From Lytechinus pictus (lineage: Eukaryota), in the NCBI RefSeq assembly GCF_037042905.1, contig NC_087262.1, forward strand, positions 15,376,001-15,440,000: 64,000 nt of DNA, read 5' to 3'. Positions 45,001 to 46,774 of this stretch are shown here, in pieces. Below the pieces are notes generated by a model that searched no databases, was not told the origin of the DNA, and saw nothing but the letters and a program-made list of their open reading frames with translations. Made by a program: the position numbers and the translations under genes. How positions within the stretch are numbered: the first letter of the stretch is position 1; every line of letters starts with the position of its first letter.

Positions 45001-46774
45001 AGAATTCAATAAGGGAAAAAATCATAGAAATATTAGCATATAAACATTAATCGACATGATCAGACACTGTTTATTAGAGTCACAGAGTGACTAACCTCCC
45101 CGGAAGGTAAAACTGAAAAAAAAAGGAAAAGCTTACTCAGTAAACAACGGTTGTGATCCATCTCCATCATACATGTATTCCAGAGTTGGACTCGCGGGTT
45201 CCATCTCTGCATAATTCACATCTGAACGATTCATATCATCCTCATCTTCCCCATTTTTTCCAGTCACTTTACTTTTGTAACCGTCTTTCGAGGTTGAAGG
45301 TCTGTCCATCTCATCGGGCAATACTCCCTTTTCTACGACATAATCATACCGATCTGTCCTCTTATAAACATCTTTCTCTTGTTTTGGGATACTAGTCCTC
45401 TCTTGCAGAGAAGCATCGCTAGCTTCTGATAAAGCAGCTATCATATTGCTTTTGGGCACAGTTCTTGATGGTATATCCGGTGATGAAGGTTGAACTGTCT
45501 TTGAGGTTGATGATCGTAGCATGCGATTGCTGTCATTGTCTTCCACATTCTCAGGGCTGCCTGGTGGTGTGCTCCATGGTGAGCCTGCTTGTCTAGTAAT
45601 GCGAAAAAAACACCAAGTGAAAATTTCAAAATTAAGAATACCAGTACAGCTTCGATTAATACAGATATAGAGTCTTAAAACGAACAAGATCAATATTTAG
45701 TTGTTCCAAAGCCAAACTAGGCAAAAGCAAATTGTAACTAGTGCTATTTCCTTCTCAAGACCTACTTGTTGGTTTACAAGGTGTCAATAAGGGTCTGTGA
45801 TTGCAGACTATCATACCCTCTTTGATGTTGTAGTACATATTAGTATTTCTATCTTTTGAATGAATATTGCAGTTCATGAAATGAAGCCTAACCCTAACAA
45901 ACCCAACCCCGCCAAGCCCACTTTTAACCATGAATGACAAGAACTCACTTCCTTCTTTCAGCAGCGGCTGCCATGAGATCCCTCCTCCTCTGCATCTCAG
46001 CTCTCTCCTCTGCACTCATCATCGCCTCCTCCTCGTCCTCTTCAGGATTTGATTTCACTCCACCTGGGTAAAGAAAATAAGAGAAAAGGAATAGTAAGGG
46101 GGAAACAGAAGCCTACAAAGAATAGTGGCCCAAATGGTTCTTGTGAGCATATGTACTGAGCCATCCAAAGAATGCACTGCAAGGTCATACTTGTATTCAT
46201 CATCAGATTATTAGTTTGGAGCTTTGGAAACATTTCATTTCATTAAATTAAAAGCTTAACTTGAGTAGTCGCAATGAGCAATAATTAAGAGAGAAAAGAC
46301 TTCAAAATCAAGATTTACAATAGCTGAACTGTCAATCTACTTGGTTATGAAATACATATAGCTTACATAAACCAAACATTGGGGAACAATGAAATCCAGG
46401 CTGAAAATCTATTCACTATGTTATCCCAGATAAGCAGGTGGGTATTGCATGAAAAAAAAAACAAGTTCCTGACAGGAATGTTATAAATAACATAATGCTA
46501 ATTATTCATTTTCAACCAAAATCATTTTGCGACATAATAATAATAATAGGCATTTGCTACTAACACTTGGGTAGTCATTTTGATGGATTTTCTTCAACAT
46601 GTAACTAATTTTACAATCTTATTCTTAACTAGTTTAACTACAGCTAACACTGAGGTACAAACATTTACAACTAAAAATCAAACCTTTTGATGTAAAATGG
46701 AAATCCAACGTGGACTGCCTGAACCTCTTTGGGGTTGTCTCGTCCGTCTCTCTATCCCTCTTCTTGGGCATCAT
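29864..46774 (-). CDS. PARG: Poly(ADP-ribose) glycohydrolase, about 785 aa; exons 46774-46684, 46063-45949, 45592-45137, 44399-44246, 43105-42986, 42316-42233, 41003-40836, 39674-39514, 39034-38943, 34321-34196 (clipped by gap), 33328-33181, 32861-32783, 32279-32171, 31796-31694, 30756-30628, 30078-29864
   Basis: Catalytic signature [23 protein letters not shown] (GGG-x6-8-QEE), tyrosine-clasp [44 protein letters not shown]. All visible junctions are GT-AG and phase-consistent. Confidence 0.95.
30628..30756 (-). CDS. PARG: PARG coding exon 15
   Basis: [32 protein letters not shown]. Confidence 0.95.
30800..31100 (+). mobile_element. Decayed tRNA-SINE
   Basis: GACTTTGAAACAGAG..GTTCAAATCC..CTCAACCCAGGTGAG..AAATGGGTACC; same family as 39712-39989. 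Confidence 0.75.
31141..31415. mobile_element. hAT-like MITE
   Basis: CACTAGCGTACCTA / TAGGTACGCCACTG with internal T-rich tandem units. Confidence 0.6.
31694..31796 (-). CDS. PARG: PARG coding exon 14
   Basis: [26 protein letters not shown]. Confidence 0.95.
32171..32279 (-). CDS. PARG: PARG coding exon 13
   Basis: [30 protein letters not shown]. Confidence 0.95.
32783..32861 (-). CDS. PARG: PARG coding exon 12
   Basis: [19 protein letters not shown]. Confidence 0.95.
33181..33328 (-). CDS. PARG: PARG coding exon 11 (catalytic QEE loop)
   Basis: [49 protein letters not shown]. Confidence 0.97.
33495..33650. mobile_element. Harbinger-type MITE
   Basis: GGGTGTGTTTCACAAA / TTTGTGAAACACCCC. 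Confidence 0.65.
33705..33886. repeat. Imperfect (CAT)n microsatellite abutting the gap
   Basis: Direct inspection. Confidence 0.9.
33887..34195. other. Assembly gap (309 N)
   Basis: Run of N. Confidence 1.
34196..34321 (-). CDS. PARG: PARG coding exon 10 (3' end lost in assembly gap)
   Basis: [41 protein letters not shown], then Ns. Confidence 0.9.
34564..37276. mobile_element. Academ-like non-autonomous DNA transposon (2.7 kb)
   Basis: TIR TAGTCAGGGGCCTTAG / CTAAGGCCCCTGACTA, TAG...CTA termini, 3-bp TSD TAT, subterminal repeat arrays. Confidence 0.8.
35688..36115. mobile_element. Nested TIR element rich in CCGAAT repeats
   Basis: AGGGTAACACCAAAACCAAA / TTTGGTTTTGGTGTAACCCT; related CCGAAT/ATTCGG-rich sequence continues to about 36580. 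Confidence 0.65.
38626..38787. mobile_element. Small palindromic MITE
   Basis: ACAAATAGCGAATA..GTGCAATGGTG / CACCATCGCAC..TATTCGCTATTTGT. Confidence 0.65.
38943..39034 (-). CDS. PARG: PARG coding exon 9
   Basis: [30 protein letters not shown]. Confidence 0.92.
39514..39674 (-). CDS. PARG: PARG coding exon 8
   Basis: [34 protein letters not shown]. Confidence 0.95.
39712..39989 (+). mobile_element. Full-length tRNA-derived SINE
   Basis: A-box TGGCCCAGTGG, B-box GGTTCGAATCC, core CTCAACCCAGGTGAGGTAAATGGGTACC, L2-like tail GAGCGCCTTGAGCAC..GCGCAATATAAATAC..(ATT)n. Confidence 0.9.
40310..40742. mobile_element. Kolobok-like MITE (internally deleted copy)
   Basis: TTAA|AGGAGAATGAAAC...GTTTCATTCTCCT|TTAA. 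Confidence 0.85.
40836..41003 (-). CDS. PARG: PARG coding exon 7
   Basis: [38 protein letters not shown]. Confidence 0.92.
41381..41962. mobile_element. Kolobok-like MITE (longer copy of the same family)
   Basis: TTAA|AGGAGAATGAAAC...GTTTCATTCTCCT|TTAT; nearly identical to 40310-40742 outside an internal segment of about 150 bp. Confidence 0.85.
42233..42316 (-). CDS. PARG: PARG coding exon 6
   Basis: [28 protein letters not shown]. Confidence 0.9.
42986..43105 (-). CDS. PARG: PARG coding exon 5
   Basis: [29 protein letters not shown]. Confidence 0.92.
43299..43900. mobile_element. Kolobok-like MITE
   Basis: TTAA|AGAACAAGTCCACTCC...GGGGTGCACTTGACCT|TTAA with long imperfect arms; partial copy near 28220-28390. 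Confidence 0.8.
44246..44399 (-). CDS. PARG: PARG coding exon 4
   Basis: [30 protein letters not shown]. Confidence 0.88.
45137..45592 (-). CDS. PARG: PARG coding exon 3 (disordered regulatory region)
   Basis: 456-nt open exon [14 protein letters not shown]...SQPLFT, phases 2-2. Confidence 0.82.
45949..46063 (-). CDS. PARG: PARG coding exon 2 (VIM-like motif)
   Basis: cccag|[38 protein letters not shown]|gtgagt, phases 1-2. Confidence 0.8.
46684..46774 (-). CDS. PARG: PARG coding exon 1 (NLS and PIP-box-like)
   Basis: [30 protein letters not shown]|gtttga; acceptor at 46814. Confidence 0.75.

Follow-up and report, generated by a model that had tools for sequence, protein, structure and literature searches.

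A 64,000-nucleotide (nt) stretch of the sea urchin Lytechinus pictus genome (NC_087262.1, positions 15,376,001 to 15,440,000 of the forward strand; hereafter the window) contains the gene for poly(ADP-ribose) glycohydrolase (PARG), and the small second coding exon of this gene encodes a match to the VCP-interacting motif (VIM) that is confirmed and far from chance. The motif recurs at the same aligned place in PARG proteins from cnidarians to echinoderms, and it coincides with the one confidently predicted helix of an otherwise disordered N-terminal arm. On the basis of its sequence and its modelled structure, we propose that the conserved exon 2 helix is probably a VIM-type docking motif for the N-domain of the p97/VCP segregase.

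The VIM class is known, and PARG as a carrier of it is new as far as can be told. The searchable literature yielded no paper that connects PARG with a VIM (queried as PARG with 'VCP-interacting motif') and no direct p97–PARG link; two papers containing the words PARG, p97 and VIM seem, judging by title and abstract, to deal with other matters, and a study of PARG and PCNA mentions neither p97 nor VCP (PMC5766153). The extraction of trapped PARP1 from chromatin by p97 follows a SUMO–RNF4–UFD1 route (PMC8760077; reviewed in PMC13664745). The latter, dated September 2026, reviews PARylation and protein extraction, and its passages on p97 tie p97 only to PARP1, via RNF4–UFD1.

Exon structure of the PARG N terminus

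PARG lies on the minus strand of the window, and its N-terminal coding region is organized as follows.

29864 to 46774, minus strand: coding part of the PARG gene, about 16 coding exons (tblastn of L. pictus PARG-like models, with Pfam)
46684 to 46774, minus strand: coding exon 1, 91 nt, ATG at 46774 and donor GT; encodes a basic cluster and a box resembling the PCNA-interacting protein (PIP) box, and equals the N terminus of the model P0316
45949 to 46063, minus strand: coding exon 2, 115 nt; encodes the acidic tract and the VIM; acceptor AG at 46065–46064, donor GT at 45948–45947
46026 to 46043, minus strand: acidic tract EEDEEE, residues 38–43 (from the translation)
45951 to 45989, minus strand: VIM core, residues 56–68, in the gp78-type register R57 R58 / D L / M A A / A64 A65 / E R / R68
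45949 to 46013, minus strand: exon 2 part of the predicted α-helix, residues 48–70, the last two residues of which lie in exon 3 (45589–45592)
45136 to 45592, minus strand: coding exon 3, starting after a pyrimidine tract and ...attactAG; encodes a disordered, poorly conserved linker

The initial annotation of this DNA had placed a VIM on its own small PARG exon, and the exon 2 sequence, its splice sites and the spliced translation are as claimed there. Read directly on the minus strand, the exon 2 acceptor is ...tttacccAG/GTGGAG, with a pyrimidine tract upstream, and the donor is ...AGAAGGAA/GTGAGT; the K69 codon is divided between exons 2 and 3. Because 115 is not a multiple of three, skipping of exon 2 would shift the frame and lead to a stop in exon 3, as seen from the out-of-frame open reading frame 45674–45444. 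Spliced exons 1 to 3 encode, in this order, the basic cluster with the PIP-like box, EEDEEE, the VIM and SPWSTPP.

Two RefSeq proteins (P0212 and P0316, poly(ADP-ribose) glycohydrolase-like [Lytechinus pictus]) have N termini that are letter-identical to the translation of spliced exons 1 to 3. By tblastn, their residues 1–786 are placed on 46774 to 29867, most per-exon matches showing 91–100% identity and lower values occurring only where a match enters an intron or overlaps a run of N. The identity of the gene is supported by Pfam matches of the exon translations to PARG_cat_N and PARG_cat_C (PF20811, E = 5e-18; PF05028, E = 2e-22), so that both the helical domain and the macro-fold catalytic domain are present.

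A 2545-nt contig from another urchin's sequencing run (L003) holds a single uninterrupted open reading frame of 808 codons, which runs through the PIP-like box, the VIM segment and SPWATPP. We regard this contig as transcript-type evidence for the joining of the three exons in a relative; together with the RefSeq models, it supports the claim that the exon belongs to the PARG transcript. When this related-urchin transcript was compared with the window by blastn, only the better-conserved exons aligned, and the exon 1 to 3 junctions are therefore supported at the protein level only. A similar layout is found in the sea star Patiria miniata (L001) and the sea anemone Actinia tenebrosa (L002), in which exon 1 encodes the basic cluster and PIP-like box and a second exon of about 39–40 codons ends directly after AAERRR or AAEKR. 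The position of the VIM exon, common to a cnidarian and echinoderms, favours common descent over convergence.

Fit to the VIM consensus

A review gives the VIM consensus as Rx2h3AAx2Rh (h, hydrophobic), with a gp78 form, RRx2h3AAx2Rh, to which all three arginines contribute, the last one being pivotal, and it locates the helix in the cleft that the two lobes of the p97 N-domain form (PMC5389986). Urchin PARG satisfies the minimal signature R-x5-A-A-x2-R in two registers (R57..A63A64..R67 and R58..A64A65..R68) and matches the extended form RRx2h3AAx2Rh at every position but the final h, where it has Lys. In the small p97 cofactor SVIP, the VIM comprises 18-LEEKRAKLAEAAERRQKE-35, and the triple mutant R22E/A26V/R32E fails to co-precipitate wild-type VCP (PMC11310202). 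The columns equivalent to SVIP R22, A26 and R32 in a gapless alignment of 41 PARG motifs are Arg in 41, Ala in 38 and Arg in 40 sequences, respectively.

These 41 motifs were picked by the two arginines and the AA pair, and the positions +3, +4 and +8 were not selected on. All three are conserved: the hydrophobic residue at +3 (40 of 41), the Ala at +4 that corresponds to SVIP A26 (38 of 41) and the Glu at +8 (40 of 41). The conserved columns in urchin numbering are R58, A62, A64, A65, E66 and R68. In a Pfam scan of the 41 motif segments, SVIP (PF15811) was the only recurring family, matched by 11 segments with a best E-value of 2.2e-4; seven of these matches, inspected singly, cover profile positions 9–36, mostly 19–36, which is the location of the VIM.

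Conservation across animals

One catalytic exon, searched with HMMER against 1.84 billion representative sequences, yielded 150 PARGs. Scanning them for R-x5-AA-x2-R returned nine N-terminal matches, in corals, jellyfish, a crinoid, abalone, horseshoe crab, shrimps and a crab, every one of the extended form R-x-x-h-A-x-A-A-E-x-R. A profile search added 120 named full-length PARGs. Counting N-terminal regions of at least 100 residues (n = 64), the strict motif is present in 42, from about 40 named species and four of the five echinoderm classes. The conservation among invertebrate PARG N termini that the initial annotation had proposed as a check thus reaches well beyond close relatives. The carriers are as follows.

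Cnidaria: Acropora, Montipora, Oculina, Actinia, Actinostola, Rhopilema
Echinodermata: Lytechinus pictus, L. variegatus, Diadema, Antedon, Anneissia, Patiria, Acanthaster, Asterias, Holothuria
Hemichordata: Glandiceps, Saccoglossus
Cephalochordata: Branchiostoma
Mollusca (gastropods): two Haliotis species, Gigantopelta, Babylonia
Nemertea: Lineus, Tubulanus
Chelicerata: Tachypleus, Limulus and eight spiders; in a ninth spider the last Arg is replaced by Lys
Crustacea (decapods): Penaeus species, Homarus, Procambarus, Petrolisthes, Portunus

No motif, or a visibly degraded one, is seen in nine vertebrates, two tunicates, three insects, two ticks, three caridean shrimps, three bivalves, a chiton, a cephalopod, the holothurian Apostichopus, the hemichordate Ptychodera, the sponge Oscarella and two choanoflagellates. 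The earlier remark that no VIM is known from vertebrate PARG agrees with the nine vertebrate sequences, in none of which one was found. Several PARGs without the VIM retain the N-terminal PIP-like box, and part of the absences may be gene-model errors.

Composition-preserving shuffling of the 64 N-terminal regions (2000 trials) gave on average 0.14 and at most 2 regions with the strict motif, against 42 observed, although the PARG sequences are related by descent and the 42 carriers are not independent events. The catalytic parts of the same 64 proteins contain no strict motif. The meaningful point, as judged from the alignments, is that a short segment is fixed amid drifting surroundings. Comparing the urchin with Diadema, Patiria, Antedon, amphioxus, Acropora and a spider, the 14-residue motif segment is 50–79% identical and the catalytic domain 47–76%, versus 0–29% for the flanking linker. 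A homology search with P0212 residues 1–100 alone returned only the query itself.

A predicted helix in a disordered arm

We predicted the structure of full-length L. pictus PARG with AlphaFold2, using 78 aligned PARGs. The N-terminal arm contains one confident helix, residues 48–70, with predicted local distance difference test (pLDDT) scores of about 76–89, within surroundings scored 30–48. The same helix was predicted for the isolated first 117 residues, with pLDDT 80–93, and across the predictions its flanks score 30–60. As its prediction does not require the catalytic domain, the confidence of the helix is independent of packing on that domain. The VIM segment of PARG is thus a modelled helix in an accessible, otherwise unstructured region, as is expected of a VIM, and the annotated helical character with an acidic tract ahead is upheld by the model and by EEDEEE in the translation.

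Weighing alternative roles of the helix

Several observations weigh against a p97-docking role. The residue after the last VIM Arg is hydrophobic in the consensus and Lys in the urchin; among the 41 orthologues it is R in 12, I in 8, L in 7 and M in 5, and SVIP itself has Gln at this position (PMC11310202). Every Pfam match to SVIP is sub-threshold, at 15–19 bits against a gathering score of 27 bits, as is to be expected of a similarity over 17 residues. Sequence searches of the PDB with the exon 2 peptide or the 41-sequence profile found no VIM chain, in a library that excludes chains of fewer than 20 residues and may thereby drop the short gp78 VIM peptide. Repeated loss or degradation of the motif shows it to be dispensable in many animals. 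Lastly, and weakly, a language-model feature search with residues 44–76 placed clusters containing the ubiquitin-interacting motif (UIM) among the nearest neighbours, with scores of 0.51–0.55.

These UIM-containing neighbours would agree with docking of another partner by the conserved helix, either by UIM-like or MIU-like binding of ubiquitin or by contact with a replication or repair factor, the VIM fit being a coincidence among Arg/Ala-rich helices. The acidic tract ahead of the helix, as found in UIMs, is in keeping with this explanation, as are the shortness and degeneracy of the VIM consensus and the sub-threshold SVIP matches. However, the neighbour scores fall far under the bar of 0.9 and are rated as a lead only. 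A UIM consists of an acidic run followed by hydrophobic-x-x-Ala-x-x-x-Ser-x-x-acidic, with a conserved Ser four residues past the central Ala. In PARG, the position of this Ser is occupied by a near-invariant Arg (40 of 41), and no motif segment matched the Pfam UIM family at E ≤ 10, compared with the 11 that matched SVIP; on these two grounds we reject a UIM identity for the helix. Every defining VIM position is kept, including both arginines, the AA pair and the hydrophobic residues, as are the residues altered in the SVIP triple mutant. We therefore consider another docking partner unlikely, though it deserves to be taken seriously.

Alternatively, the helix could act within PARG or in its targeting, by folding onto the catalytic domain, as part of a bipartite nuclear localization signal or as the N-terminal targeting helix of isoforms started at an upstream Met. 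Such a Met is kept in many taxa and is the start of the predicted Tachypleus isoform X3, basic residues flank the VIM, and human PARG isoforms differ in their N-terminal targeting signals (PMC5766153). An intramolecular role is at odds with the confidence of the helix, which is equal or higher without the catalytic domain. A localization signal would need no invariant AA pair, conserved Glu or fixed Arg spacing, and the six acidic residues among the 23 from the conserved Met to the last VIM Arg speak against a mitochondrial presequence. This explanation appears improbable. A chance match without specific function in a low-complexity Arg/Ala/Glu stretch is scarcely credible: composition alone gives the strict motif in 0.45% of shuffles of the urchin N-terminal region (295 residues), and many proteomes contain such matches, but conservation excludes it, with matches at the same aligned place in 42 of 64 orthologous regions where 0.14 were expected, a motif as conserved as the catalytic domain amid flanks that are not, and an exon position common to a cnidarian and echinoderms.

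Other modules of the N-terminal arm

Four further features of the arm, together with an assembly gap, are located as follows.

46694 to 46729, minus strand: basic cluster and PIP-like Q-x-x-L-x-x-H-F box, residues 16–27; first conserved island of the disordered N-terminal region (conservation profile)
46017 to 46022, minus strand: M45–M46, the Met upstream of the VIM
45562 to 45582, minus strand: S-P-W-S-T-P-P, residues 73–79 (P0212); proline-directed Ser/Thr block five residues past the last VIM Arg
about 45136 to 45192, minus strand: third conserved island, P0212 residues ~203–222, S-P-T-L-E-Y-x-D-x-S-x-P-L-F-x-D-S
33887 to 34195: run of 309 N, which interrupts one PARG coding exon near 34200 and was left unaltered

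The urchin PIP-like box, QSTLDFHF, has the Q, L and final F of the PIP consensus Q-x-x-[ILM]-x-x-[FY]-[FY], with His at position 7. The urchin segment RQSTLDFHF aligns with vertebrate KQKTITSW, that is, with the putative human PIP box Q76–W82, and a pattern search, as distinct from an alignment, found [KR]-Q-x-x-[LI]...F near the N termini of choanoflagellate and sponge PARGs. The human Q76–W82 segment is required for S-phase replication foci and does not bind PCNA in vitro; the functional PCNA site of human PARG is D407–F414, a PIP box of non-canonical type, and the authors suggested a different replication protein as a possible partner of the N-terminal box (PMC5766153). The correspondence of the urchin box to a segment without PCNA binding weakens the earlier proposal of a PCNA–PARG–p97 module, and such a bridge is possible but unsupported.

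On the other side of the VIM, a [ST]-P-[WY]-[ST]-T-P block lies at equal distance in Diadema, three sea stars, amphioxus, a hemichordate (PPSSTP) and a gastropod (SPYFTN). Binding might be subject to a phospho-switch at such proline-directed Ser/Thr sites next to the helix. Echinoderms, amphioxus, corals, horseshoe crab and shrimp have the third island in common; vertebrates lack it, and it corresponds to no motif known to us.

A Met located 6–12 residues before the first VIM Arg recurs in many phyla as [DE]-M-[SDE], and Tachypleus isoform X3 is predicted to begin at the Met of an EEMSQEE block, 12 residues before that Arg. This Met may be an internal start that gives a VIM-first isoform without the PIP-like box. 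Predicted isoforms of horseshoe crab (Tachypleus, P0171/P0172) and shrimp (Penaeus, P0179) have lost the PIP-like box and kept the VIM, and a coral isoform (Acropora palmata X4, P0155) starts just past the VIM exon; these gene models show the two modules to be separable. The 597-residue L. pictus model P0318 is without exons 1 to 3, and its differing N terminus was not found within the 64-kb window.

We found no SHP box in the PARG N-terminal regions, and a sequence resembling the VCP-binding motif, ELRRRR, occurs among them in Acanthaster only. Assignments as a D-box, APIM, MIM or PAR-binding motif fail at the conserved columns, as assessed by eye on the alignment.

Consecutive PARG introns hold two near-identical open stretches in minus-strand frames (41380–41672 and 40309–40553), in all likelihood two copies of a single interspersed repeat. 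The 90%-identity cluster of Mytilus PARG (P0059) also holds ribosomal protein eS24-like entries, and in one spider record (P0211) PARG is fused with an eIF domain; both have the appearance of adjacent genes joined into one model by the source annotations.

A proposed link between PAR turnover and p97

Taking the conserved helix as a VIM, we suggest the following mechanism. An amphipathic Arg/Ala helix within PARG's N-terminal regulatory region, which is disordered, would dock, most likely, in the interlobe cleft of the p97 N-domain, as do the VIMs of SVIP and gp78. We infer p97 binding from the sequence of the motif, and its outcome could take either of two forms: PARG may be the adaptor through which p97 reaches PARylated chromatin, or p97 may use the VIM to pull PARG off its substrates or to control its residence or turnover. 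The p97 hexamer offers six N-domains, and VIM-bound PARG need not exclude UFD1–NPL4 from the same ring. In evolutionary terms, the VIM would be an ancestral trait of eumetazoan PARG. Downstream of the basic cluster and PIP-like box, it closes the small second coding exon at its 3′ end, and several lineages, among them insects and vertebrates with tunicates, would later have lost it or let it degrade.

A broader scenario, which we offer tentatively and regard as somewhat doubtful when taken as a whole, is that ancestral animal PARG was a direct p97/VCP cofactor, with neighbouring small exons for its replication-foci box and its VIM, and that removal of poly(ADP-ribose) (PAR) was thereby physically coupled to the ATP-driven extraction of PARylated or trapped proteins such as PARP1. 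The proline-directed Ser/Thr block might then switch p97 binding, and the link would have been lost in vertebrates with tunicates, and in insects; such losses would explain why it has gone unnoticed.

A conserved VIM would place PARG among the p97 cofactors and would point to an older and direct coupling of PAR turnover with protein extraction. Sea urchin, sea anemone, amphioxus and shrimp would be tractable non-vertebrate models for the PARG–p97 idea, and the PARG VIM would exemplify a motif overlooked when standard model organisms lost it.

Comparison with known p97 cofactors

Vertebrate and urchin PARG are alike in having a disordered N-terminal arm, a basic cluster, a homologous PIP-like box and isoforms that differ at the N terminus. 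They differ in that the vertebrate arm is about 200 residues longer and contains no VIM in the 9 vertebrates examined, nor is one present in the 2 tunicates.

Two DNA-repair enzymes with p97/Cdc48 docking motifs of their own, Wss1 and SPRTN/DVC1, come closest to the proposed PARG in function. SPRTN/DVC1 combines an SHP box, a PIP box and a UBZ, and would be the nearest precedent for a PCNA-linked p97 adaptor. Wss1 recruits p97/Cdc48 through a VIM and an SHP box (PMC4559962). Both resemble the proposed PARG in being chromatin-acting enzymes that recruit the segregase by short motifs, although they are proteases rather than glycohydrolases. PARG, without an SHP box, would bind p97 through one motif only, and PCNA binding by its N-terminal box is doubtful.

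The VIMs of gp78 and SVIP offer the closest comparison with the motif itself. The VIM of gp78/AMFR, for which a structure with the p97 N-domain is available (PDB 3TIW), has the form RRx2h3AAx2R, which the urchin sequence fits including the extra front Arg and its AAAAERR run; after the pivotal Arg, gp78 has Leu and urchin PARG Lys, and gp78 is an endoplasmic reticulum membrane E3 ligase with its VIM at the C terminus. SVIP is a 77-residue lipid-anchored protein that consists of little beyond a VIM, whereas PARG is a nuclear enzyme of about 790 residues with the motif in a disordered regulatory arm, and the two share no homology outside the VIM. Within it, the SVIP core R-x-x-L-A-x-A-A-E-x-R and the PARG consensus R-x-x-[LM]-A-x-A-A-E-[KR]-R are nearly identical.

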